Made by a program: the position numbers and the translations under genes | Origin: Dicyema japonicum | Taxonomy: Eukaryota; Animalia; Dicyemida | Direction: 5' to 3' | Assembly (NCBI GenBank): GCA_011109175.1 | Contig: RDEW01000018.1 | Coordinates: 820,510-884,509, forward strand | DNA length: 64,000 nucleotides | Part shown: piece by piece, positions 4,972 through 58,300 of the stretch | Numbering within the stretch: position 1 is the first letter of the stretch | Layout of the letters: each line of letters starts with the position of its first letter | The notes under the pieces: generated by a model | Told to the model about the DNA's origin: nothing | The model's input: only the letters and a program-made list of their open reading frames with translations | The model's database searches: none

Positions 4972-5399
4972 TTTTTATTTAAAATATTTTACTGATATTC
5001 AACGAAATTACTAATTTTATTATAGACTTTCTCGGTACTTGGAGGACGTTAAAGATAATAGTTTTAAATCCATGAATTAAGTAATCCCAACACAAAACAG
5101 CAGTGATTTCATTTTGGCAGTGATCCTCTCTGGAGGCAACACACCACGTACTGGGTGGAGAGCAGATCGATAAGACGAATATTCAGCACTATCTTTTTGA
5201 ATTAGTTAGTCCATAGATGTCAGAGTTGTTTTTTTAGAAATTTACCGTTTTGACACAACGTATTCTGGATCATTGTTCTTGGTTGAAGGTTCTGCTGGAA
5301 CGCGTCAGGATCGAAGAATTAGCTATTTTTGTTTATCCTCAGTTTTTGGAATAATTTTATTTATTATTATTATTATCACGGTCACAGGAACTGAAATTT

Positions 5400-9198: not shown

Positions 9199-9264
9199 GG
9201 CGTCATGCGATTCACCTTTTGTTGTGGTGGCGCTCAGTGCAAGTTCTGCATGGAAAAAAACCGT
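9199..9264 (+). ncRNA. HDV-like pseudoknot candidate (variant type II)
   Basis: P1 GGCGUC/GGCGCU, P3 ACC/GGU, P4 GUGCA/UGCAU, partial P2, A-rich J4/2; same layout as 35282-35344. Confidence 0.5.
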
Positions 9265-10000
9265 TCGACTTTCCCTACCCATCTGCGATCTTTAGAAGGG
9301 TGGCCTATCTATTCCCCTGTTTTCTCTTTACTACTTCTGTCTGGTGATGTAGAACCTAATCCGGGACTTGATTCCTTGAAAGAATTTAATTTTAATGAAA
9401 AACGTGACACTAGGTTGTCTAGTTGAGTCTTTCAGGAATTTCTGGGATAAAGGAGCAAGACGTTGAAGATGGAAGATCCGACGCAAAAATTAAAGAAGAT
9501 GGAACTTTGTCGACCCCCATGTTCTGTCCCGATTCCAATCGAACCACTTGATCGTCGCTTTCACTAACTTACCTCCTCTGTCAAATTTGTGGCATAACAA
9601 ACTTAAAGAAACTCAGAATCAAATGCTCCATTTGCTTAAACTTTGGACATGTCAACTGTCACAAGCTATAAAGAAGATAATTACTCTCAAATTGGTATAA
9701 GGATCCCCTGCCGCAAAACAACCAATCAACTCCATTGACTCCGACCTACAAAGTGCCTCCGATTGTATAAACTTGTGTCCGAGAGTTATTCCGCTTCGAA
9801 TCCAAAAATGTGATGACTAATTGTCACTTTTTAGCTGTCGAGGCTGATTACCAGGGCCATCTAAGATTCCACTCTTGTTCTCTGAGCATACATGTCTGAG
9901 TTAAAAGAAAGAAACCTCAAATCGACTATCAATAAAATCGTCTCAGAATAGCGGAGGTGCTATTTTCATAGTGTCAAAAGCCTTGTTGATACCAATGGAA
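9199..10000 (+). mobile_element. 5' part of a 2A-bearing LINE, followed by decayed RT sequence
   Basis: ORF 9205-9426 contains SLLLLSGDVEPNPG; downstream broken frames give KDP...STPLTPTYKV (RPISL-region-like). Confidence 0.6.
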
Positions 10001-15680: not shown

Positions 15681-15744
15681 AATTTTCGATCTGAGTCACC
15701 TCCTTGTGGCGAAACTTGGGATTTCTCAGGAAATCCTTCTGGCT
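15681..15744 (+). ncRNA. HDV-like ribozyme candidate (canonical type I)
   Basis: P1 AAUUUUC/GAAACUU, P2 AGUC/GGCU, P3 ACC/GGC, L3 UCCUUGU, J1/4 GG, P4 GAUUUC/GAAAUC, C at 15736. Confidence 0.65.
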
Positions 15745-17955: not shown

Positions 17956-19683
17956 ATGTCTGTTTTTTATGATGTACTACACGAAGACACCTCATGCAAA
18001 GGGTGCAGAGTATCCAATTCTCGCAAGTGCGGGATTCGATGTTCTGTATGTGTTGGTTACTACCACATAGGTTGTGAAAAACTATCCAAGAAAATTGCTC
18101 GATCACTTCCCTCGTGGTCGTGCCGACTGGAACTCACTAAAATTGAACCTCATGATCATTTTGTGTCATCATCATCTGTATCAGATCTTCTGGAAGCCAT
18201 GTCTCCGGAGGATTTTCTGGTTTTATTATCAAACACGCGACAAAGGAAGATTATCCCTGTCAGGATCCCCAAGGCTTCCAGAATCTCAATTGCTTCAGCC
18301 CTTTCTTCTTGCATTGAGATAGCTGTGTCCAATGGCTCGAAAAAGGATTGGATGGTTCTTTTCTCTTTTCCTGTCCTGGCTATGGGGTTAGAGCGTAAGC
18401 CTGCCCCATCTTCTCGGAAACCCTCTCTATCCCATGTCCTGAAGAAGCGCGTGAGTGCCTTTATGGATTCATGGGAGTCCCTGGCTGAAGAATTATTTGT
18501 TTCCCCAGTTGATTACTTCCCAAAGTCCAATTCCAAACAATCCAGTATGGCTCCTGAGAGGCTTCGCTCTCGTGTCAGGAGGAAATTGATGGAGGGCGAT
18601 CTTACTGCTGCAGTTCGAACTGTTTGTACGGATTCTGACCCGGTGAAAGTCACTCAGGAGACACTCTGTATATTGGGACAGAAACATCCTCCAGAACCAG
18701 AAGATTTTTGTAAACCTGTTTGTCCAGAACAATCTATGCATGATATTTCCACTTCAGCCATTTACAACGCTCTTTGTTCTTTCCGAAGAAGTAGCAGTGT
18801 AAGAGTTGACGGTCTCAAACCTGAACATCTATCAGACCTGGTGTCCCATTCTGTCGGCAGGCCTGGATCGCTACTCTTGGAGCGAACCCGGGATCTCGTA
18901 GCTCGCATGCTTTCCGGAAACGTTTCCGATTTTGGTCGGAATCTCCTCTTTTCAGCGAATCTAACGGGCCTTGGAAAGAAAGATGGTGGTATTCGCCCCA
19001 TTGCAATTGGAAACGTATTTCGACGTTTATCCGCAAAAATGGCTTGTCGTTTTGTTATCTCCCGAATTTCAGCCGAATTTTGTCCTTCGCAGCTTGGTGT
19101 CGGAATCAATGGCGGCTGTGAAGCTGGGATCCACGCAGTGAGAGAATTTGCGTCACAATCAGCTGAATTGAATGTTGAGGACAGAGTTTTATTCAAATTG
19201 GACCTCCGGAATGCCTTCAATTCAGTCAGAAGGGACACCGTTCTTGATACCTGTAGGAGGAGGATTCCTCAGATTTATCCCTTTGTATATCTCGCGTATT
19301 CGGATCCATCCCCTCTTGTTTTTGGCAGTGGAATTATTTCATCCGGATCCGGAGTTCAACAGGGGGACCCACTCGGTCCTCTTCTATTTTCTTTGTCTAT
19401 CGACCATATTGCCCAAGACTGTTGCACTCCACTAAACGTCTGGTATCTGGACGATTGTATTCTTGGTGGAAGTCCCGATGATATTCTCTCCAAAGTGGAA
19501 TCGATCAGACGTTTGTGTGGAAAAATCTGTCTGGAATTTAACAATGAAAAGTGCGAAGCAACTAATCTGAATTTGAGTTCCGATTCATTCTACCTTTTTC
19601 ATAGAAAACTCTGCGAAATCATCCCAGTGGTTAGGGAGACTCATATTGATTCTCTCGACTTCCTTGGTGTGGGATTTTGGTAA
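17956..19683 (+). CDS. CRE element ORF, N-terminal 575 aa (PHD finger plus reverse transcriptase)
   Basis: Uninterrupted ORF carrying the RT motifs listed for the element. Confidence 0.9.
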   Translation: MSVFYDVLHEDTSCKGCRVSNSRKCGIRCSVCVGYYHIGCEKLSKKIARSLPSWSCRLELTKIEPHDHFVSSSSVSDLLEAMSPEDFLVLLSNTRQRKIIPVRIPKASRISIASALSSCIEIAVSNGSKKDWMVLFSFPVLAMGLERKPAPSSRKPSLSHVLKKRVSAFMDSWESLAEELFVSPVDYFPKSNSKQSSMAPERLRSRVRRKLMEGDLTAAVRTVCTDSDPVKVTQETLCILGQKHPPEPEDFCKPVCPEQSMHDISTSAIYNALCSFRRSSSVRVDGLKPEHLSDLVSHSVGRPGSLLLERTRDLVARMLSGNVSDFGRNLLFSANLTGLGKKDGGIRPIAIGNVFRRLSAKMACRFVISRISAEFCPSQLGVGINGGCEAGIHAVREFASQSAELNVEDRVLFKLDLRNAFNSVRRDTVLDTCRRRIPQIYPFVYLAYSDPSPLVFGSGIISSGSGVQQGDPLGPLLFSLSIDHIAQDCCTPLNVWYLDDCILGGSPDDILSKVESIRRLCGKICLEFNNEKCEATNLNLSSDSFYLFHRKLCEIIPVVRETHIDSLDFLGVGFW

Positions 19684-28640: not shown

Positions 28641-28957
28641 AAAAGGTATATAAACATATGCACTAAAGATTTTTTTGTTTTAATTTGATGTAAACGTTGT
28701 GTAAAACATTAGTTAATTCTGATTCTCCATCAAAAATGAGCTCTCTCAGAAAAAAAATTATTTTATTTATAAAAACTTACAAATTTTCTATAAATATTAG
28801 TCATAAAATTAATAGCATTTAAACAACATGACATTTGTTTTGTTTATTACTTAATTTATTGCATGCAAATTGTTTAGTCAATTGTACAGATTTGTGATAA
28901 TCAATTTGATTATTTGATGATAAAATTCTATTAATTCTACAAATATAATAATATATA

Positions 28958-31900
28958 AGCCCCACTTTATTTAACAAACAATAAAAAAAAGTTAATATAT
29001 TTATTAATCAACAACCTTCCTCGCCTGCCTGTTCGCCAGCCTCCTCAGGCAGGTTCGATTCTGGTTGCTGAAACAACTCCGAGAGCGCTTTGTCTAATTG
29101 AACCCTCTGCCCATATGGCATCTCAGGGCTCTGCCTCCTATACTCCAGTGTCAGGCTCTCTAGGGTCCGCTTTAACACAGTGGACTGTAGATAGGCCTGG
29201 AGCTTCCTATCTACCCCCAACTGCTTCAGATAACCCTTGTGGTACTTTGTTGCAATTCCTTCCCACGTCATTACTATAGGAATAACGAGGACCTTGCAAC
29301 CAAGCATCTGCCCCATCTCGTTTGCAAGAAAGTCATACTTCCTTTTTTTCTCCACCTCCACAGTCTGCAAACGGTCTTGAGACGTGATGCCAACCTCTAT
29401 GATAAGGACTTGGCCAGACTCCTTATCGTGTACCACAATGTCCGGTTTATTGTGCTTGACTAGCACCGAGGTACGGATAACACTGTCTACCTTAATTTGG
29501 ACCCTGGTGTTCTCTACTACAGATTGCACCTTATGAGTCCGCAACTTTCTGGTGTGGCGAATACCATACTTATTGCATAGTAGAAGATGAAGACTCCTTA
29601 CTACCTCGTTGTGCCTCCACACATAGTCGTGGCAGAGCATGGATCCACATCGAGTGGCTAAATGATCAACCGACATGCTCCTTGACTTACAGTGGGGACA
29701 TGTATTTGTTGATCGACCCCAAAAAATATTGCGGTCTTGCATATACGTGTACAACGCCTCCGATCGAGGTGAGTTGTCACCGTATTTTAGCCATATTGTC
29801 GACGACTTAAGGTCGACATGTGGGTTGTCCAATGCTCTGAAGAGGACCTTATGAAGGCTTTTTAAGTTGATCTTTTCCATCAAATTATTATATTGTAATT
29901 CGATCAACGCCTTCACATTTACTAGCCCACCATCATCAACACCATACTTAGCAGACAAAAAAGGTCTGATAGTGCCTAGGTGGGTTGCCCGTGTTTTCTC
30001 GGTCGTTATTATGGCGTGCTTCCTAGCAGACACACTTGACCCAGCTATCAGGGTGTCGTGCATTCGCATTAGGATGCGCTCACTTAGTTGGACTACTCCA
30101 CACAGTCCACGGCCGAATTTATCACGGGGTAAATATAGTCTCTCCTTATTGGCTGCCAACACATGGACATGGTTCTCTCTGAGTACTCCACGGATCATAA
30201 CATCCATCTCATCATACTCTTTGGGCTCAAACTCCACAACACCTATGTAGTAGTTTAGCAGCGAGACAGCATACTCATTTAATGCTAGGAACAAATTCCT
30301 TGCATTTAGAGACGTCTTACACAATAACGCTGCTCTTTTACGGATGCCTTCAGTAATTTGTCGCTTTGTCTCAGGCATTATAAGGGACTTTGGAGATTCG
30401 GTAACACCCAGATACTTATATCCTTCGTGTTCCTCTAGGACTCTTACTAACTCGCTACATACTTGCGTGTTAGTCGCAGACTTTGAATAATTCAAATCTA
30501 GCCCTATACTCTCAAAGAATTCCCTGGCACAGACCCCCATGGAGTAGAGCTCCTCGGCTGTTCGAGCATACATCTTCAGTCATCGATAAAAAGAAGGTGA
30601 TTTGTACTGAAACAGACCCCTTCACAATGAACTGGTATTTGCTCAAACCGGTCATTGAGGCGGCGACTCAATGGCTCCAAACAGAGAACAAAGAGTAGCG
30701 GAGACATGCTATCCCCCTGAAGGATCCCCCTCTTGAGTTTTACCTCGCCTATCCGGTGCCTATTATAGTTCAGATGAATACTCCACCTATTCATCACAGC
30801 CACTACAAAGCTGATGAACCACACAGGCATACACAGACTGTGTAGGCACTCGACAAGGTAAGAATGATCAACTGAATCGTAAGCCTTCTTCACATCCACC
30901 CACATAGACAAAAGTGAGTTTCCGTGAGACACAGAAAGGCATTTGTTGATCAAAGCCTGCTCTTTTGCCCCCTGACAATTTCGAACAGTTCCCAACTGAT
31001 TCTCGGAGAGAATCCCATTTGCGTCTACAAAGCTTCTGACCTCATTAGCCACTAATTTGGTCATCAGCTTATACAGGGTTGGCATGCAGGTTATCGGTCG
31101 ATAATCTGCAGCAGACTGGGGGTTGTCCAGCTTTGGGATCAAATAAGTTGTCCCTGTGCATGCCCAATCAGGAATCGTTTCCGGGTTAGTGATGCTTTTC
31201 TGTAATACACGACACATAGACTCGTGTAATGAAGTGCATCTTTTGATAAAGAAATTATAAACTTTATCGACCCCGGTCGTCTTCCAATCAGGGAGATGTC
31301 TCACTACCGCCTCAAATTTCTTGCGAAAATCGAAAATTCCGCAAGATTCCGCCAAGAAAGGAGCGGCGCTGTACGGGACATTCCACGCATTTCCTCTGCG
31401 TGGTTTAGCCTCCCACATACTACCCCATGTGGAAAGCATTTCCGCGTCCTGCTGGGAACATACACTATGGCCATTTTCGTGTAGGCGACGGTAAAACAAT
31501 CTGCGATTAAACTCAAACAGATTATTTTCTCTCCTTCTCTTACACCGACTTTCATGTGTATAGAGTTTCCTCTTATACACCATTATTGCCCCCTCTAACT
31601 CCACCTTTGCCCTCCTCAACTCTTTGAGGTCCCATTTGGGAACACGGAGTTTACTAATTAGCCCCTTTACTATAGCCGGTGCTTTTCCTCTAACCCCTCT
31701 CGCCACACTACTTATGTGCCCCTCCAGTGCTTCCAGCTCAGTCTGTCTCCAAGCAATCTTGGCACAGATCTGCTCCCTCCATTTACTGGGTGGTCTGGGC
31801 TTGTCCGTCAATTCCTCATAGGTGATCTGTGCTGCATACAGCACTAGGGAGATGTCACCCAATGACCCTACTGGCTTAGCCTCCACCGCATAAGCCACAG

Positions 31901-32423
31901 CCTTATTGATGCAGGTTAACACTCCACCGTTAACCTTACAATGAGGAATCTTGCGGGTAAATCTACGGTCCTCAAGTGGGACATCTGCCGCTGCAGCGAG
32001 ATTCCGCGCAAAGACCTCATAAACATGCTTGAGCTGCAACGTATCACAGCTCTGGTGCTCGTGCTCTCTTTGACAGTTGTGGTCACCTGGTCCCCGCCCC
32101 TTTAGACCAGTACCCTCTTTGCCTACAGCCATCTTCTTGAGTTCACTCACAGATATAGCAGTACTGAATCTGCCACTGCAGAGCTCCGCCAAGTATGGCC
32201 ATCCATTCCAGGGCATTCGAGATAGCCTGCTACGTACCTGCAGGACTACCTGCCTCGCCCATTCTTTTGGGTCATCTGCCACAACGCTCTCGGATATGGC
32301 AAGAATTACATTCATACCATCAGGTAACGCAAGTGACCCTTCTCCTTTTTTCCTTTCAACATTTTTGCCAACTCGAGAGAGTTTTAACGCCACCGAATCG
32401 AACGCACGTTGCATGTTATTTAT
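28958..32423 (-). mobile_element. Near-intact R4/Dong-like non-LTR retrotransposon (RT, CCHC, REL endonuclease) with 20-bp TSD
   Basis: ORFs 32414-30576 and 30573-29008 join through a 1-nt frameshift at FIDD(L)KMY. Motifs YRPITC, DVKKAYDSVDH, GILQGDSMSPLLF, CPHC...HLATRC...RHNEV, KPDIV...IIEVG...EKKRKY. TACAAATATAATAATATATA at 28938-28957 and 32424-32443. Confidence 0.93.
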
Positions 32424-33189
32424 TACAAATATAATAATATATACTTTTCATGTATTTTTTCACAATCTTCTGATAGTTTAAATAAATTTATTATTCCCTA
32501 TTATAATTATTAGTGTCATACATTATCACTCATTATTATTTGTCACTTAGTTATTAATTTATATTAAACAAATATATTAGTTTTAAGTCTATAATTTTAT
32601 CAAATAAAAAAGATTATAATTTTGCCTTAAATTAATTAATTTTGCATGTGAATAAAAATTCTTCCGATTAGGGATTATTTCATAGATTAATTTATTGATA
32701 AATGTAAAACATCGGACCATTCGTCCCACTGCCTTTTGCTTTTCACAAACAAAAGGAGAATCATATTTACGGTGATAAAGTTCGCATTCTTTAAACCATT
32801 CCAGACATTGATCCCAGTCAGTCGCACCTTAAAACGATTCACCACTGGGTTTCTATTAATATAATCAAAACCCCTGCTACTAACAAGCTTCTGGAATCTC
32901 TTTCCCTCCACATTGAAGGAAACAAAACTTCACTACCACCGGAAATTTGTGCCCTCTTGGTACACCTTTGGTCCTGTCACTATATGGCTATTTAAATAAA
33001 ATCGACTTTGCTGTTTTGTTCATTTTGTCTTCTAGATTAATAGAAGTGTCACATTTTCTCTTTTCCGTTTTCAGGTTCTGCGCCACCACATCCTCTCAGG
33101 ATCGTTGGCACATGGTTGTGACTTTCTTGTTAGTCACCTGTTTTCACTTGAAGGTACCGGGGTGAATAAATATTAAATAAAAGAAACAA

Positions 33190-33539: not shown

Positions 33540-35190
33540 CAGCCCAGCAGTTGCGTGGACAACTCAAATGAGTGGGAGATATAAAAAAAGATGCCATCTG
33601 ATGGACCTGGAGTCCTTGACAGCCCTCAGACATCTGAATAAAAGGATCAGTCAGAGTATAAAAGAACACAAGGACAAGAGATGGCTAGTTAACCACCTCG
33701 ACAGGAAAAGTACATCCCGACATTTACAAGTCAAGTCGGAGCTGGATGATGCAGACGGAACCGGAAAGTCTTTTCCTGAACACTTATGCCACCTACATCC
33801 TAACACCCTTATGAAACATTACGCTGGAATTAGCTTCAAACCATTCTCGAAACACCTGGACATTAAGGTGCGTGCCCATAAACCGAAGAAGAAACCTTAC
33901 CACGAACTATTCTCAGATGACCAAGTCTTGGATGTGATCACCAGATTAAAGAGCTCACGGGCGTGCGGGCCTGACAAAGTATCTTCTATTCACCTAAAAC
34001 ATCTAAGCCACTACGCAATTTGCAACCTCACGCATATATACAACCTGTCCATCAACTATAATATTACTCCCAAGATTTGGAAGAATTCTATCATCAGACC
34101 GATATTGAAGGATGGGAAACCAGAGACAGAACCTACCTCCTACAGGCCTATTTCCGTTACCATCACACTGTCAAAAATTATGGAGAAACTTGTACTATCA
34201 GTCATTATTCCGTATCTTCCACGTCCTATATTTCAACATGGTTTCCTCCGCGGTAGGTCCACCGCTACATACTTGGCAACCCTATCGCAGTCCATTGCCG
34301 ACGGTTTTAACACCCATCCCCCGCCTCACAAACGCACAATCTTGGTTTCTATTGACATCAACAAAGCCATTGACACTGTTTCGAGGAAAATCCTGGTTGG
34401 AAAAATATTTTCTACTAATATTCGTCCGAATGTGAAATTATGACTGGCCAACTTTTTGTCTGGAAGACGTGGAAGAGTATTCAGTGGTGATCTCAGATCT
34501 AGATCACGATTACTACCGAACGGGGTACCCCAGGGGTCTCCACTTTCACCAATTCTATTCAACCTATTCCTACACGACCTACCTAATGATGGAGACGAAG
34601 ATTCCCTGCTATCATCCTACGCAGACGATGTAGTCATTGCAATACGAAACCGCTCGACGCAAATCGCATCCCTTAAAACTCAGACAAAATTGAACACTCT
34701 CCACGATTAGAGGACCACGAGGAACATGGACTTTTCCGTTTCTACCCTCTACCAACAAACAATCGCGCCTGCCGTTGAGTATGCCTCCGTTGCATGGAGA
34801 TTCGCGCTATCGGAGTCTATGGTCCAAAGAATCAACTCGATACACCGGAAAACAATCAGTACGCTAATGGATCAACAGTCGACCCACTACTCATGGAAGC
34901 TAAGATCCGTAGTCGTGGCTCCGGATTTCTTCGCGTCTGTGAGGAAGATGGTAATTCGCTTCGCCTGATCCTTTCCACGGCAAGAGAAAACCGATTGGAT
35001 AAGAAATTCCCCTCCCCGATCGGATTCCTTTGCAAGATCGAGAGAAGGCTCTTCCGGAAAGTAGTGGGGACGATGGAAGATCACAGACGCCGAATGGCAC
35101 AATTGATTGCCGAGGACTGGGATCACCTAACTGTTTAACTCTTTTGTCTTTCTTTCTCGGTTTCCCGGGGTTATTAAAATAAAATAAATA
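33540..35190 (+). mobile_element. Ingi/Vingi-like LINE, RT region and 3' end (no RNase H seen)
   Basis: SRACGPD, SYRPISVT, QHGFLRGRST, DINKAIDTV, GVPQGSPLSPILFN, YADD; TGIT-stop at 35116-35130, then an A-rich tail. Confidence 0.85.
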
Positions 35191-35281
35191 AATGCCGCGT
35201 GGCGCCATGTAGTGCTTTGTGGCTAATTGGTTGAAGTTTCAGTTTTGTTCGTCTGTTCCCCTTCTTTCTTCCTATTAGAGT

Positions 35282-35344
35282 GGCGTCATGTGATCCACAA
35301 TTCTAGGTGGCACCCAGTGCTAGGCCGGCACGGAAAAGGATCAC
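35282..35344 (+). ncRNA. HDV-like pseudoknot candidate (variant type II), best P2
   Basis: P1 GGCGUC/GGCACC, P2 GUGAUCC/GGAUCAC (7 perfect bp), P3 AC(A)/GGU, J1/4 CA, P4 GUGC/GCAC, J4/2 GGAAAA. Confidence 0.6.
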
Positions 35345-35399
35345 TCCCCCACTCCACTGGGGCTTTGTTGATGTCATTCTCAGACGATAAAGAAATCGT

Positions 35400-36824
35400 C
35401 ATATGAGAATGAATTAAACTGACTAAATTAAAGACATGTGTGATAAGTGGATTAGCAAAGTGTAAATAATAATAATTGTAGGAAAGGGATACATTAACAA
35501 ATTATTTGATTCCTCATTGTAAAGAGAATGATGAAATAAACTCAATGGTAGTGAACCGAATATTGGATATGAAACTAAATATGTCATCAATACTAGAATA
35601 ATTAGACCAAGAATATATAAATAATTATTTATTAGAAACATTTTCATTATTGTGATCATGTCCAATTGGACAAATAAAGTTAGGAGTGTCATAATAGATG
35701 GAGTAATATATAATATAGTTAATAAAACAAAATGAGGAATTACAGGAAACTATGAAAATACTGAGTAATATTGTAGATGGAATAAACATTAATAATTATA
35801 CTTTGTGTGATTTAATAGTTGAAAAGTATTATTATAATAAAGTATTCAAGAACATTTACAGCAAGTAAAACAATTAAATTGGATAATATCAAATTATAAG
35901 AATTACAGGAATGTTGTATACTTTTGGGTATTTATAATATTAATAGATGAATATCCCTTTAAACCCTTTTTACTATCATTTGAGGAATCATTGAAAAGTG
36001 ATTAAGAGAGTTTATTATATAATGTTATATTTTTATTATATTTAGGAATTTGAGGCTGTTAATTATAGATTGGATGATTTACTCTAATGGATAATACTTG
36101 CTTAGATCTTAATTACATTACCCATATTATAACATTGTGATGATCTAATTACTCAATTTACACAATATGTCTATACTATTATGGATCCACTATCATTATT
36201 GGAATCTCATAAGCATATTATTGCCTTTTTAGGGTCTTTTGAGGGATCATCGATATCAAATGATTTATCATATACTTTCGGAAATATTAGACAATGATAC
36301 TATTTCATATGCTGGAGGTTGTCTATTTGTGTCATCAATTTCATTCATTTATTGAGGATTTGTACTTTTATTATTTAGATTAAAACATAAAATTGATTTT
36401 CTACACACAGTCACACAATACTCAACATATTATTTATTGTTTAAAGACATATTCACTTTTTCTGTAGATAAAGTCAAAATTTCGAGTCATGTCGTCCCCA
36501 AGCACCTCAATGCATTTTTTGTACTTTTGACATAAGGCACCTAGCACATATGTGCACAGATTACATCTGCAATCGATCTTCCTTTCCACTTTGTCCAGAT
36601 ATAAAAAACTGTTAACTTTGTTTTTTATTCAGTACAGTATAATAAGGGATAATTCTTTCCGTAATTTCGTTAATAGAATAATAGGTTTTAGATATGGAGG
36701 TCCTTTTGGTTTTCCTGGCTTCTGTATGGGGATTAACCACTCGCTGCCAATATCTAGTTCAGTGGTTCTCAACTCACCCAAATTGGGCGTTGGAAATTTT
36801 ACTTTTGGGCGGTGGGATTTGTAA
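35400..36824 (+). CDS. Unidentified multi-exon host gene (5' end not resolved)
   Basis: Open exon-like blocks separated by ~22-nt GT-AG tracts (near 35460, 36024, 36610); last exon ends GGPFGFPGF...GRWDL-stop. Confidence 0.45.
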
Positions 36825-50851: not shown

Positions 50852-51928
50852 TCATGTAAAGTGTTTAATTAAATATTTTATAGGACGATAGAATATTGCG
50901 GCGTCAAGCGATTTGAAATTCTCAACGGAAAAGTCAGATATAAATTTTTCTGTTTCTTCTCTGTATGAATCCCATTTTGCACGGTTGTAATTCGTTATAG
51001 TTTTCCGATGCATAACAATAGGTGAGAGTAGTTCGATTGACAGTAGAATTGGATTATGGTCCGAGTGTAGGTCATATACAGTTCTCCAAGATATCGCCGA
51101 AGATAGTGATGGCAAACATAGTGTGAGGTCGGGTGATGTATTAGAGTCTCCAGGTTTGGAAGCTGTTCGAGTGTGTGATTTCCTGTCATTGAGGATAACT
51201 AATTGTTCTAGTTGAGAGAGGACCTGAAACCACCTCTCATTACTCTTTTGGCCGATTAGCCAGAGAGGATCTTTTACATTTAGGTCTCCGCAGATTATCA
51301 CATTTTCAATATTTTGCAATTCGGTTAGTTTTGGGGAGTAATGTTTCATACTGGGACTTGGTGGCGGGATGTAAATATTTACGAATGTATACTTTGTGTA
51401 GTTTATTTTTACCAAAACGGAAGTAAGTTCGATGTGATTGTCATCTTCAAACAGAGCTCGTGTCTGAGCGAAAGTATCGGAGAATGGAATAAATTTGTGT
51501 ATGAGAACACCGCCTCTTCTGTTTGAATTCGGTCGGTCACGGCAGACAATTGAGTAGTTTTTGTAGTGTGGAAGCACTGACTTTCTTGATAGTTTCGTTT
51601 CCTGTAGCAAGGCAATATCAATTTTGTGGGAAGTTAGAAATGCAAAACGTTCATTTGATTTGTGTATGAGGCCGTTTATGTTGAATTGCATGATATTAAG
51701 GAATTTCCCGTTTTTATGCCCGGGGTTCTGTTCGATGTTTCCAGCTAGGATTAGGAGTAGCCAATCCGATCTTTGGGAGCAAAAGCTACGCGCCTGCTCA
51801 ACAGCCGCCATCATCCAGCCCGACTTCCCATAAGTCGTTGATAAGGTTGACAGGAAAATAGTATTGGTTCTTATAGTTGCCAGTTTGATACAGGCATCCA
51901 ATTTTCCCCACGTGAAGGTGAACCACAT
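50852..51928 (-). CDS. LINE ORF N-terminus: leader, 2A-like peptide, APE endonuclease (358 aa)
   Basis: WLLLILAGNIEQNPG, then QFNINGL, LLQETKL, RRGGV, NIYIPP, GDLN, LND, SPDLTL, SDHNPI. Confidence 0.88.
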   Translation of the reverse strand: MWFTFTWGKLDACIKLATIRTNTIFLSTLSTTYGKSGWMMAAVEQARSFCSQRSDWLLLILAGNIEQNPGHKNGKFLNIMQFNINGLIHKSNERFAFLTSHKIDIALLQETKLSRKSVLPHYKNYSIVCRDRPNSNRRGGVLIHKFIPFSDTFAQTRALFEDDNHIELTSVLVKINYTKYTFVNIYIPPPSPSMKHYSPKLTELQNIENVIICGDLNVKDPLWLIGQKSNERWFQVLSQLEQLVILNDRKSHTRTASKPGDSNTSPDLTLCLPSLSSAISWRTVYDLHSDHNPILLSIELLSPIVMHRKTITNYNRAKWDSYREETEKFISDFSVENFKSLDAAIFYRPIKYLIKHFT

Positions 51929-51936
51929 CGAAAATT
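51865..51936 (-). ncRNA. HDV-like ribozyme candidate (canonical type I), best example
   Basis: P1 AAUUUUC/GAAAAUU, P2 UGGUUC/GAACCA, P3 ACC/GGG, L3 UUCACGU, J1/4 GG, P4 UGCC/GGCA, J4/2 ACUAUAA with C at 51876. Confidence 0.75.
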
Positions 51937-52146
51937 TCTAGACAGCCGGTGAAAAGATTTCTTGGAAGAAGCTAGAAAAGCATGAAAGGTTATCAGTGGC
52001 ATAGATGAGGGAATTCTATATGAGAGAAATTAAATTAATTAAAATTCTTTTCCAAAATAGGTATTTTTAATATTCTAATAATTATTTTTAATGTTTTAAT
52101 AATATTATTTAAAATAATAATAATAAAGATCGTTTGCTGTTGCGTG

Positions 52147-53814: not shown

Positions 53815-56400
53815 AAGAAACAAATGTTAGTTGAGGAAGCCGGCTGCATGGATAGCGAACGAGTTCCCTCGGAGTATGGCCATTCCAATCTTTTGTCTCA
53901 GTCATAACGCTTCTCGTCGATCCCTTTTTTCTTTGGCAAGCATTCCTACGAGTTCATGTAAGAACTCAACCGTAACAGGAGTAAATCGATAGTGGTCCCG
54001 AGGGTATATATTTCTTGGTTTTCGAGTTTTCTGCGGTCGAAGCAGCTGCTCCAGGTGTCTGAGCCGATTTGAAAAGATTCGTGCTTGAAAATGTGTCACA
54101 AGTTACGTCCCAGACCAAAGATCTTCCGGATGTGTAGGGGAAAAGGGTGATCCCATCAGGTCTCTTTCCATCTCCTCGATCGAGACCCACTGGTTCAAGC
54201 TGTAGCATTCAGAGCTCTGACGATCACATCGTTCAAAGCAGCGTGACGTGGTCCTCTTCCAGCGCTTCTTCTGCAGGACAGCAGGTGCAATCCCTTCGCA
54301 TCGACTGTTTTCCCGCATCGGCATCGGTGCTCCTGGCAAACGTCTAGTCCTTGCCTTTGTCAGATTCCATTCCTCAAAGAATCGTCCTCCAAAAAATCTC
54401 TAGGTTTGGCAGTTTGAGAAAGACGACAGATATGCGGGTACGCAACCTTCAGCGCCGATCTTAGACCGACACCCCCAAATCCAGAAAAAAAATTTACATT
54501 AATTCCAATCAAGTTCGTTAAAGCGGACGTTAATTAGTGACTCAACAGTTTGTTTGAGAAATTTGTCTATCGAAAGTAGACTGTCGTATTGTTCGTAGCT
54601 GGGTGAACATCGTAGTAGATATAAAAGCTTTGGTAGTAGGATTTTGTTCCTCATCAGGAAGAAGGATGTGTGAGAGTCGAGACATGACAATCTTTTTTGC
54701 AAGGCGTGTTAATTCTTCATTTTTGGAAAGCAGATAGTTCTTGGGTTTCTCTTCGCTGAGTGAGCATCCAAGGAAATATAATTTGTCAACTGGTACAGTC
54801 GGGATCCCAGGAAGCAGTTTGTTAAAAGACTCCTTGATAGAGAGAAAGTCGGTGTTTAGAAATGAGACATTTATTAGCTTTGATTTGTTAACATTGATGT
54901 CAAAACCCAAGAGTTTTAAAGCGGGTTACGTAGTGAATTGTACGTTTCCTTGAATGATCCTCCGATTGTGGCATCGTCGAGATACAAGAGATTCACAACT
55001 TCATAAATGGTCAGGGCAAATAAGAGAGGTCCAAGCAGATCTCCTTGTTGGATCCCCGTTTTTGATTTAATAATTTCATTTTCAAAAACCAGAGACGTAT
55101 CTTCTCCATGGGATAATTTGACAAGAGGAAAAAGCTCTCGCGCCCTCTTCCAACACGTTTTTATAATTTTATCTCTTCTGATAGAATTGAATGCATTCTT
55201 TATGTCCAACTTAATTTCAATGCATTCATTTGAAATATTTCTCTGTGTGAAAAACGCCTTGCTGTATGAACCGCAGCCTCACATCCGTTTTGGCTGATAA
55301 CACCCATTTGTTTTGGAAAGAACTCTCTCCAAGTTGTCGGCTCTACAGTGTCGATGCTACTTTTGCTGCAAGTCTTTTGAAATAATTCTTGACCGCAATG
55401 GGGCGGATTCCCCCATTAGATTTTTTGAAAGCAAGTAGCCTTGCGGAGAAGAGCAATTCTCTGGAATATTCTGGGATGTCGTTGATAACCAGTTTTCTGA
55501 TTAGGTCCGTAATTGATTTGAATAGACGTCCTGCTTCCGATGTGTAAGTGGACGTAAGGTCTTTAATATGTCCAGGACGTAACCCTTCCAAGCCTCCGCC
55601 GCTGCTAGCGGCGGAGGAAGCTACTTCGGAATCGGTCATGATAATCTCTGGGGTTCCTCCAGGATTCAAAAACTTTTCATAGTCAGTCGGTGCATCTGGA
55701 TGCTTCAGTATTAAGGTGTTCAGGACCTCGGGGGTACAAGGCAATACTATGTCATCGGACGTGATAACCCGTAAGGCTGCCCGCACATCGCCCTCCAGAA
55801 GTTTACGTTTACTCTCTCTTTTAGTTTGTTGGGGACATCTTTGATGTATGCTCCTCTGGTTTCGACTTCATTGACATTAAGTGACTGTCCAAGTATTGCG
55901 TGTATGTTATGACTGCTAAAATTCATTATGTTTAGTTTCAGTTTCCCTGATAAGTTGAACCGGGAGTTTGTTTCTTTATTATTGTCCTCAGATTCCGTTG
56001 TAGGTACAAGTGCAACACATAATTTTTAATCAGGATTCCCAACTGTCAGAGGACAGTGCGTGATCAATGGCATCTGAAAGACACGTTGATGCTGCAATTT
56101 GTACTTTTTTAGGGATTTTTAATAAAATCTTTTTGGCTTTCTGGTGGTTCGAGATCTTCAAGAGAGTGTGGTCAGTATGTGGCAGTGTAAAGTTTGGTTG
56201 AGCTATTTTTTCCCGCTTGGGGACCTCCTTTACAGTACAAGAGGGCCACAGCCAACTCGACAGCGTCTCGGCGCAAACTTTACTCATTTTTATGCAGCCC
56301 AAATGGATGAATAATTTACATGGCGTGCAATTAATTCCAAATTTCCTGATATTCGATTGTCCACATAAGAGACATGAGTTGTCCTTACTGGCTTTGTTCC
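53815..56400 (-). mobile_element. CRE family 2, near full-length, decayed (PHD-RT-REL)
   Basis: CLLC...CTPC....HLGC...W (PHD); KSNGGIRPIAV, DIKNAFNSIRR, GIQQGDLLGPLLF, YLDD, DGKRPDGITL, WDVTC. Confidence 0.88.
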
Positions 56401-56634
56401 TCGTACTTCGTCTCTTTTTTGTTCTTTATATCTATCTGAGACGATCACACCACAGCACACGTTTTTTCAAAGAAATATTTTCTAATCTTTATTTCCATTT
56501 TGCGACATTGACCAGCTAATAACATAAAAAATAAAATTTTTCCAAAGACGAAATGTAAAACCAAACTAACTAACTTCTCGATCCTGACGCGTTCCAGCGA
56601 TATCAGAACTAGTCCTCCAATAAAAAAAATAGTT

Positions 56635-56696
56635 GGATCCTTTTTATGCCGACCAGGCATTAGGCGTCTCTTTAGTAAGGTGGATTCAATGAAGCC
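56635..56696 (-). ncRNA. HDV-like pseudoknot candidate (variant type II) upstream of CRE family 2
   Basis: P1 GGCUUC/GACGCC, P2 GAAUCC/GGAUCC, ACC, P4 AUGCC/GGCAU, J4/2 AAAAA. Confidence 0.55.
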
Positions 56697-56758
56697 ATAT
56701 AGCACCACATGGCCACACGCGGCTAGTTAGAATAGTATTTTTCTGAAAAATTATGAAC

Positions 56759-58300
56759 GCGTCATGTGGTTTGCCATATCTTAGTTGCGCATATTGTGGA
56801 ATCTACTTAAAAAACAAAAAGGACCCTTTTATTCCTTAAATCCAAGAAGATTGTTTTTCCTGGATGGCCGCCTTACTGGTCTGCCTTACCCTACTTGCTC
56901 AAAGCCCGACTGATGCTCCCCGGAGATATAAATCCAAATCCCGAGCCATGAAAAGCCCTTGTCCTTTTACAGCTAAACATAAACGGAATAACAGGGAAAG
57001 TCCTTGAAATCAGGGACCTTCTGAAAAAACAAAACATAGACTTTCCCTTACTTCAAAAAACAAAACTGTCTTCTCCACACTCACCCCAGCCTTTTCAGGC
57101 TACAACATTATTCGACGTGACCGCCCTTCTGGCCGCGGTGGTGGAATCATTACACTTATCAAGAAGGAAATCTCCTTCACGGAAAAAATACACATCCACT
57201 TTCCCTTTCCCGTTGAATACATCACAATTTTAACAAAGATTGGATCCATCACAGTATTAAACAAGTATGTACTCCCTCCCACTGCTTGCCCCAAAGGATT
57301 CAGTTTCTCATTGCCAGATGTCGATTATACCAATAACCTGTTATTATATGGAGACTTGAACGAAAGCATTCGATGTGGTTCAAAAACCAGCCGAGAGAAG
57401 CCAGAGTTTAATTATCTTGTGTTATTAAAAAACCCTATATTTAATACAATAACTTCTTAAGAGCAAACGACAAAACATCCTGCTCGACCTGATGTATGCT
57501 TCCACAAAAATTGTCTCTCTAACCAATTGGTCAGTGTCTTACAATACTACCAGTGACCCCAACCCCATTATCACTACCTTCAAAAAAAGACTGTTTCTCT
57601 AAAGAAAGTTTATGTTACTGCCAGGCTACAAAAACGTCGACTAGAGATTGTTTTTATACTTCGTAGACTACAAATTGTGTGGTTGTATTCTAACAACTTC
57701 AACGTCCTCGACAACGCAGTAAACTACTCCAATGGTGTAGTGCGTGAATGTGTGAGAATTTTCATCAAAAGGAAGTCAATCCATTTTACGAAGAAGCCTT
57801 CCCATGCATCCGATTCATTTACGAAAGAAAGAAATTGTTTAAAAACCTACATATTCAATCTTAGGAAACCAGGATGAGGATTCTAGCCTTGGAGAGAGAT
57901 CAGAAATAAGGCAAGATGAAACAGAAGAGAGTCTCGAATAGCTTCATGTCCACCCTAAGCCTTTTACAAAACTATTTCTATTTTGTGTGCATCTTCAAAA
58001 AACTGGAAAAACTCATTCTCGATAAGATTAAACCTTAACTCTGGGACGTATCTTCCAACATGGTTTTAAGAAGGCTCATTCCACAACTACTCACCTAACA
58101 CGCTTGACAAAATTTATCAAAGAGGGCCTACTATGCAAACTTCGGTATCAAAAGATTTGTTCTATTGACATACAGAAGGTTTTTGACTCGATTCCGAGGA
58201 AATTACTAACTATGAAGATTTTTGACTGAAACATTCCAAACAATTTGAAAATTTGACTTGCAGCCACTGAAAAATCGCAATCTCGAAAAAAACGTAAATA
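56759..58300 (+). mobile_element. Decayed 5' half of a 2A-APE-RT LINE with a degenerate type II fold at 56759-56815
   Basis: GCGTCATGTGG start; ARLMLPGDINPNPEP; LQLNINGI, RGGGI, YVLP, YGDLN; later HGFK...STT, DIQKVFDS. Confidence 0.75.

Follow-up and report, generated by a model that had tools for sequence, protein, structure and literature searches.

The stretch at 35282-35344 on the plus strand of the Dicyema japonicum window (the window being the whole 64,000 nucleotides of DNA that were analysed) can be drawn as an RNA with the topology of the HDV ribozymes, and it had been read as lacking their catalytic hallmarks. This raises the question whether the locus encodes an atypical self-cleaving ribozyme or a non-catalytic, HDV-derived pseudoknot which is kept for another role. 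A sequence-only reading of the window had left these two possibilities side by side. We favour the second one, and find in addition that the fold, called type II in the following, is homologous to canonical-looking HDV-like folds in the same window, called type I.

Four type II sites of about 65 bases each had been proposed, at 9199 (+), 35282 (+), 56696 (-) and 56759 (+), and all four are indeed present. They are listed here with the pairs formed in each helix, the values of copy 4 being counted on an alignment of the four sequences (alignment A3):

9199 to 9265, plus strand: copy 1, LINE-borne; P1 7/7 with a G.U at its base, P2 5/7, P3 3/3, P4 5/5
35282 to 35344, plus strand: copy 2, the focal copy, SINE-borne; P1 6/7, P2 7/7, P3 2/3, P4 5/5
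56633 to 56696, minus strand: copy 3, SINE-borne; P1 5/7, P2 7/8, P3 1/3, P4 5/5, J1/4 UA
56759 to 56824, plus strand: copy 4, degenerate, LINE-borne; P1 4/6, P3 2/3, P4 3/5, AUG at 56764

The layout suggested for these sites also holds. In the aligned consensus GGCGUC is followed by AU, P2, ACC, the loop L3, GGU, GGCGCY, CA or UA, the P4 hairpin, an A-rich linker and P2'. The helix order P1-P2-P3-P1'-P4-P2', which is the HDV topology of a nested double pseudoknot, is common to all four copies. In copy 2 the parts of the fold are placed as follows:

35282 to 35288 and 35308 to 35314, plus strand: P1
35288 to 35290, plus strand: AUG, resembling a start codon
35290 to 35296 and 35338 to 35344, plus strand: P2
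35297 to 35299 and 35306 to 35308, plus strand: P3
35300 to 35305, plus strand: L3
35315 to 35316, plus strand: J1/4, with the bases CA
35317 to 35321 and 35327 to 35331, plus strand: P4, with C35331 at its end
35332 to 35337, plus strand: J4/2

P2 and P4 had been said to change in sequence and to keep pairing. This is correct for P4, which reads GUGCA/UGCAU, GUGCU/GGCAC, AUGCC/GGCAU and, as a core, GUGG/CUAC. It is also correct for P2 in copies 1 to 3; copy 4 has no convincing P2 and is, with its incomplete P1 and P4, as degenerate as had been claimed. Relative to copy 2, the P2 helix of copy 1 shows two double compensatory changes (U-A to C-G and C-G to U-A).

A covariance model was built from the four copies and run with filters off over both strands of the whole window. 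Its matches are these four at 62-73 bits; such high scores are built in, since the same four sequences served to make the model. No fifth type II copy was found in the window by this search, the next match reaching 10.8 bits with an E value of about 1, and the type I folds were not matched by the type II model. Independently of the model, blastn aligns copies 1 and 2 with 71% identity over 72 nt (E = 0.006). Pairs were counted on alignment A3 with P2 entered as a pseudoknot. Standard pairs occupy 75.9% of the cells, compared with 32-51% after shifting the 3' partners by 1-3 columns, and in six pairs both sides have changed. The covariation score of 0.317 lies above the shuffle mean of 0.187 and was reached in none of 500 shuffles, a result which with four sequences is indicative only. 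RNAalifold recovers P1 and P4 of the type II copies de novo. MFE z-scores are not discriminating for pseudoknots; they range from -0.17 to +0.5 for the single type II copies and amount to -1.23 for a type I control.

In Rfam release 15 no HDV-family match to type II was found, neither at the gathering score over the whole window nor at E <= 10 locally. The type I control at 51865-51936 is likewise without a match at E <= 10 (51800-52000 searched). The silence of Rfam on type II is therefore uninformative, because a canonical-looking type I fold is missed too, and Rfam searches will miss the class in this genome. Candidate relatives in public collections were also considered. An exact 17-mer scan pointed to 54 metagenome and five viral-contig loci; the covariance model gave three weak matches, which were driven by the seed word and were rejected as chance.

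The type I folds and the coding remnants next to the LINE-borne copies show to which kind of element the fold belongs:

51865 to 51936, minus strand: type I comparator; P1 AAUUUUC/GAAAAUU, L3 UUCACGU, J1/4 GG, P4 UGCC/GGCA, a C in J4/2
15681 to 15744, plus strand: second type I comparator; L3 UCCUUGU, J1/4 GG, P4 GAUUUC/GAAAUC, then C
9205 to 9426, plus strand: leader ORF of copy 1, from an AUG inside the fold through the 2A (StopGo) site LLLLSGDVEPNPG to the first APE residues, broken thereafter
56910 to 57361, plus strand: frameshifted 2A/APE remnant downstream of copy 4, found by tblastn with the type I ORF (E = 4e-6 and 2e-8)

The type I AUG at 51928 opens an intact ORF of 358 aa (50852-51928, minus strand) with a 2A-like motif and, after it, an APE endonuclease (Pfam Exo_endo_phos_2, E = 1e-13). 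A 2A leader (D[V/I]ExNPG) downstream of the 5' fold and before APE is present for both type I and copy 1. The ORF which starts at the AUG inside the copy 1 fold reaches DVEPNPG, and its leader/2A part matches that of type I in BLASTP (E = 2e-5). The APE remnants after copy 4 lie at the distance expected from the type I element. Copies 1 and 4 head decayed 2A-APE LINEs. The leader peptides encoded by the fold, located upstream of the 2A site, begin with MRFTF... and MWFTF.... At the nucleotide level the block AUGNGRUYCACC occurs in both types, and copy 3 has the P4 stem AUGCC/GGCA in common with type I. Judged from sequence, that is from the shared blocks, the position relative to AUG, 2A and APE, and the matching leader/2A and ORF remnants, type II is the positional homologue of the ordinary HDV-like 5' fold in related 2A-APE LINEs. 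As the leader would be shed at the 2A site, its peptide sequence would be freed to serve the RNA structure.

Further non-LTR elements are found in the window. Two adjacent long ORFs of 521 and 612 aa at 28938-32443 (-), the upstream one matching RVT_1 with E = 1.5e-20, look like a young non-LTR element. Two diverged LINE copies at 17956-19683 (+) and 54955-56386 (-), with 31-47% amino-acid identity, possess an N-terminal cysteine-rich finger and RT, and a Pfam search for APE gave no match in either of them.

The four copies do not form one uniform set of element 5' ends. Two copies are LINE heads. The other two do not start their element at the first base of P1; they lie 88 nt (copy 2) and 34 nt (copy 3) from the start of SINE-like units, in which they are preceded by a common head, GCCGCGUG...:

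35194 to 35281, plus strand: head and leader of the copy 2 unit, beginning with GCCGCGUGGCGCCAUGUAG... (GCCGCGUGGCGCCAUGUAGUGCU at 35194)
56697 to 56730, minus strand: head of the copy 3 unit, GCCGCGUGUGGCCAUGUGGUGCU..., which is the 35194 head joined straight to the fold

Exact head matches occur in the window only at these two places (35194 on the plus and 56730 on the minus strand). The local alignment of the two heads gives z = 8.3, with 0 of 300 shuffles as high, and by local alignment the head was not found before copies 1 and 4 or before type I. Within the head, GUGGCGCCAUGUAGUGC presumably resembles a tRNA D-arm. A tRNA origin of the head was not confirmed, as ARAGORN found no tRNA in it and Rfam nothing at E <= 10. 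A common leader upstream of P1 in copies 1 and 2, in which 9 of 13 bases agree by eye, was rejected, since local alignment gave no significant match (z = -0.03).

The sequence that follows copy 3 is met again at 5294-5375 (+), where it ends in a (TTA)n tail. This 83-nt stretch is 79.5% identical to the copy 3 region (E = 1e-12), has no recognisable fold upstream, and probably represents the 3' portion of a further member of this SINE-like family whose 5' part is degenerate. Because of this recurrence with its tail, copy 3 is assigned to a SINE-like unit of about 215 nt, which probably lies upstream of a separate LINE fragment and does not represent the 5' UTR of that LINE. The LINE copy at 54955-56386 (-) is found about 130 nt downstream of the unit.

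For copy 2, the assembled contigs of four public sequencing runs were placed on 35100-35700 at a likeness of at least 80%. In run X1, 4055 contigs could be placed, which makes copy 2 a member of a huge repeat family. The family unit starts at 35194/35198, where 64 + 17 contigs of this run diverge into heterogeneous flanks, and a contig from a second species covers exactly 35194-35343. There is no end class at 35282 among the best-supported loose ends listed for the assembled contigs. Since the unit starts at 35194, the genomic copies inherit the 88 nt which cleavage before G35282 would remove. Copy 2 fits a SINE in which a middle part homologous to a LINE 5' end stands behind an unrelated head, given its 71% identity over 72 nt to the LINE-borne copy 1.

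The surroundings of the copy 2 unit comprise two more features. At 33568-35193 (+) there is a LINE with RT (ORF 33568-34443, Pfam RVT_1) and an apparent highly repeated 3' UTR (35080-35193) with a (TAAA)n-like tail. The SINE starts right after this tail, which suggests insertion into A/T-rich tails. Downstream of the fold, a perfect-looking inverted repeat at 35367-35419 (CAUUCUCAGACGAU...AUCGUCAUAUGAGAAUG) may be the 3' stem-loop of the SINE tail; Rfam gives a single chance miRNA-like match there (E = 5.5).

The majority sequence of the family differs from copy 2 in six letters, and all its helices are perfect, with 22 of 22 pairs formed. The change from AAT to CTG at 35299-35301 restores P3 as ACC/GGU, A to G at 35312 restores a C-G pair in P1, T to C at 35321 turns the U.G of P4 into C-G, and G to A at 35333 makes the linker GAAAAA. 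From the end of P4 onwards the majority reads GGCA-C-G-A-A-A-A-A. Among the variants listed, none at 5% or more affects C35331, G35317 or the CA of J1/4 (35315-35316).

Can such a fold cleave? The GG of J1/4 had been reported as absent, and it is, with CA, CA, UA and UA in copies 1-4. The wider statement that the catalytic hallmarks are lacking stands only in part. It is right for the GG and for the G of L3, which is missing in three copies; it is wrong for the catalytic C, which the focal copy and the family majority possess. At this position copies 1-4 have U, C, U and U. As had been noticed, the base can act as the closing pair of P4 together with the first P4 base in copies 1-3 (G-U, G-C, A-U), the corresponding bases of copy 4 being U-U. 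In copy 2 and the family majority C35331 stands directly after the P4 core and is followed by G(G/A)AA. Genomic HDV and CPEB3 have C-G-A-A after P4.

The loop L3 is UUUUGUUGU in copy 1, where the type-I-like GU before P3' is kept. Counted on alignment A3, the family majority has UGUCUA, copy 2 AUUCUA, copy 3 UUACUAA and copy 4 AUAUCUU. The conserved U...G of L3, a reverse wobble, is broken in copies 2, 3 and 4 by the missing G, and the SINE majority and copies 3 and 4 have an A in its place, before P3'. Copy 3 moreover has AUU in place of AUG. P1.1 canonically consists of two pairs in which CC of L3 is opposed to GG of J1/4. In type II a P1.1 can be drawn between L3 UG and J1/4 CA in copy 1 and the family majority, and between UA and UA in copies 3 and 4; this is a dinucleotide match in a loop of 6-9 nt and likely to arise by chance. 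In R2 ribozymes much sequence variation is tolerated outside the catalytic C and four other positions, J1/4 comprising 0-2 nt; the Nasonia R2 ribozyme no longer cleaved once its L3 G was lost, and the sow bug R2 version, which has no L3 G, is inactive (PMC3774820). In view of the altered active-site signature and of the 88-nt head kept in every informative SINE copy, cleavage by type II is probably weak or absent. The C-G-A-A of the SINE-family majority and its possible P1.1 of 2 bp leave room for residual or conditional activity.

The head itself might influence the fold. In the predicted MFE fold of 35195-35344, the bases 35196-35208 can pair over 13 bp with 35280-35292, so that CGCGUGGCGCCAU of the head is opposed to GUGGCGUCAUGUG, a segment spanning the 5' P1 strand, the AUG and the first bases of P2. 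The same two stretches also form a near-perfect direct repeat of 12 nt (GTGGCGCCATGT / GTGGCGTCATGT). This complementarity could serve the masking of the fold in SINE RNA, or could mark the recombination point that created the SINE. An alternative P1 made from the first bases of the element (35194-35200) was rejected, as it consists of only 5 bp and a mismatch.

On balance we think that type II is a module derived from an HDV ribozyme, with little or no cleavage activity of its own, and that it is kept for a role in cis. Its source would be the HDV-like ribozyme heading 2A-APE LINEs of the Ingi/Vingi/L1Tc style. In the LINE copies (9199 and 56759) the fold is situated at or near the front of the element with the initiation codon in J1/2, so that the first 20 or so codons are the pseudoknot itself; at the 2A StopGo site the resulting junk peptide would be released before the endonuclease is made. 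A SINE-like family of very high abundance (35282 and 56696) would have taken up this module as its body, behind a separate head. Master copies keep the perfect nested double pseudoknot with an altered active-site signature: J1/4 CA(G) for GG, the L3 G missing in three of four copies, and at the catalytic position a C in the SINE family and a U in the other three copies, able to close P4. In LINE RNA the module may persist as a structure acting in cis, by which translation initiation and the 5' end are positioned, and SINEs would reuse it, probably in order to engage the same ribosome or LINE-protein machinery. More tentatively, and with some doubt on our side, one may picture a delta-type ribozyme that was converted to a non-cleaving, structurally selected pseudoknot and now acts as a cis signal for retrotransposition and translation, positioning the LINE start codon and docking SINE RNA to the ribosome or LINE-protein machinery. 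If the non-cleaving reading is true, a ribozyme has been taken over as an RNA recognition module, and this in very many copies as a SINE body.

The data can be read differently. It seems rather unlikely to us that type II is a self-cleaving HDV-like ribozyme which remains active with a variant core and processes LINE co-transcripts, and that in SINE RNA the head masks P1 so that full-length molecules survive. The P1.1 of this core would consist of L3 UG with J1/4 CA (or L3 CU with AG), and the catalytic C would be followed by GAA. Activity of this kind would agree with the complete set of helix pairs and the C-G-A-A right after P4 in the family majority, with an L3-J1/4 pairing that each of the four copies allows (CA to UG or UA to UA), and with the 13-bp complementarity of head and P1. 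The CPEB3 ribozyme works with a single Watson-Crick P1.1 pair, which also counts in favour of activity, as does the wide variation tolerated by R2 ribozymes beyond the catalytic C and four positions (PMC3774820). However, neither the SINE majority nor copies 3 and 4 possess the L3 G needed in the Nasonia ribozyme, and three of the four copies have a U at the catalytic position. The head is kept in the genomic copies, copies 1 and 2 perhaps share 13 nt upstream of P1, and no copy class beginning at P1 appears among the best-supported loose ends listed. Because all four window copies reside in dead elements (immediate stop codons in copies 2 and 4, an ORF broken past 2A in copy 1, a frameshifted APE after copy 4), the U in three of them could also be decay. 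Type II would then comprise dead copies of ordinary HDV-like ribozymes which lost GG and C after insertion, and there would be no distinct type II family. The U may indeed arise by C to U change, copy 2 has CG where copy 1 has UG, and the private mutations of copy 2 are repaired in the family majority. What makes decay an improbable explanation in our view is that the majority of thousands of family members has CA in J1/4, not GG, together with L3 UGUCUA, that the GG is missing from J1/4 in four copies which are only about 70% alike, and that copies differ in P2 and P4 by double changes which compensate each other. CpG decay was rejected as an explanation of the C to U change, since a depletion as mild as the one observed (observed/expected 0.79) does not bear it out, and three independent losses of the same C are not expected from it. 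A consensus that restores GG and C had been named beforehand as the mark of dead ordinary ribozymes; the larger family sample keeps the C and does not restore the GG.

The last reading takes the HDV-like drawing as a coincidence, with a conserved SINE/LINE block that forms ordinary hairpins and is unrelated to delta-type ribozymes. We find this hardly credible. The unremarkable z-scores of the single copies, the missing Rfam match and the little statistical power of four sequences are compatible with it, but nested-fold energies and Rfam fail on the type I control too. The pairing collapses when the partners are slid, and the four helices, the pseudoknotted P2 included, are perfect in the family majority. 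Furthermore, homologous LINEs of the window have a canonical-looking HDV fold at the corresponding place with respect to AUG, 2A and APE, and type II has sequence blocks in common with this fold.

HDV-like ribozymes at LINE 5' ends and SINE bodies derived from LINEs are each already known. In the literature searched we found no paper joining HDV-like folds with SINEs or cephalopods, and no description of a delta-type pseudoknot which is structurally perfect in a hugely abundant SINE, altered in its core and still attached to its uncut head. SINEs are reported to make up 11.6% of the genome of Octopus vulgaris (PMC13282606). If the type II module is non-cleaving yet selected, it shows other uses of the fold, for example cap-independent initiation or docking to the retrotransposition machinery, and would explain one enigmatic conserved SINE body. 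If it cleaves, the accepted active-site sequence space of the HDV-like family is widened.

Among the known systems, the CPEB3 ribozyme is one of the closest; its cleavage was reportedly demonstrated by Salehi-Ashtiani et al. in 2006. Like type II it is compact (about 65-68 nt), and like the family majority it continues directly from P4 into C-G-A-A. Its P1.1 is weak and not GG/CC, as the P1.1 that may be drawn in type II would be, and its L3 is identical to the UUCACGU of the type I copy. Unlike type II, it keeps the U...G of L3 and occurs as a single intronic copy; its G1.U wobble has a counterpart in copy 1 alone.

The HDV-like ribozymes of R2, RTE, R4, LOA and Ingi LINEs have the same helix order P1-P2-P3-P1'-P4-P2' and an A-rich J4/2, and like the LINE-borne type II copies they are found at the LINE head, just before or around the start codon, according to the parts of the sources used here (Sanchez-Luque et al. 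2011, via PMC5786205, PMC3774820). Compared with the ribozymes as described there, type II has CA or UA and not GG in J1/4, misses the L3 G in three copies, and has in three copies a U at the catalytic position which can pair as the last pair of P4. Its SINE copies are also internal, so that sequence upstream of the would-be cleavage site is inherited.

The architecture is the same as in the L1Tc/ingi elements of trypanosomatids, in which the 5' HDV-like fold Pr77 is followed by a 2A peptide and APE-RT, and Pr77 has been carried into the short non-autonomous NARTc, RIME, SIDER1 and SIDER2 just as type II into SINEs (PMC3185411, PMC4035085, PMC5814959). SIDER2 contains a second, internal signature, and several SIDER folds are inactive in vitro (PMC4035085). 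In contrast to Pr77, the type II module is located in an animal host and stands behind a different head, not at +1; the two are likened by architecture and not by sequence.

SINE bodies are known to have arisen from the 5' parts of RTE and Vingi LINEs, and SINEs with such middle bodies show the same succession of head, LINE-5'-derived body and tail as the copy 2 family, according to the part of Kojima 2018 drawn on here (PMC5786205). In that part a cleaving 5' ribozyme, which would truncate such SINEs, is treated only as a cause of 5' truncation and not as a SINE body. Compared with the SINEs presented there, the captured piece in the copy 2 family is the HDV-type pseudoknot itself, and it is structurally perfect in the family majority.
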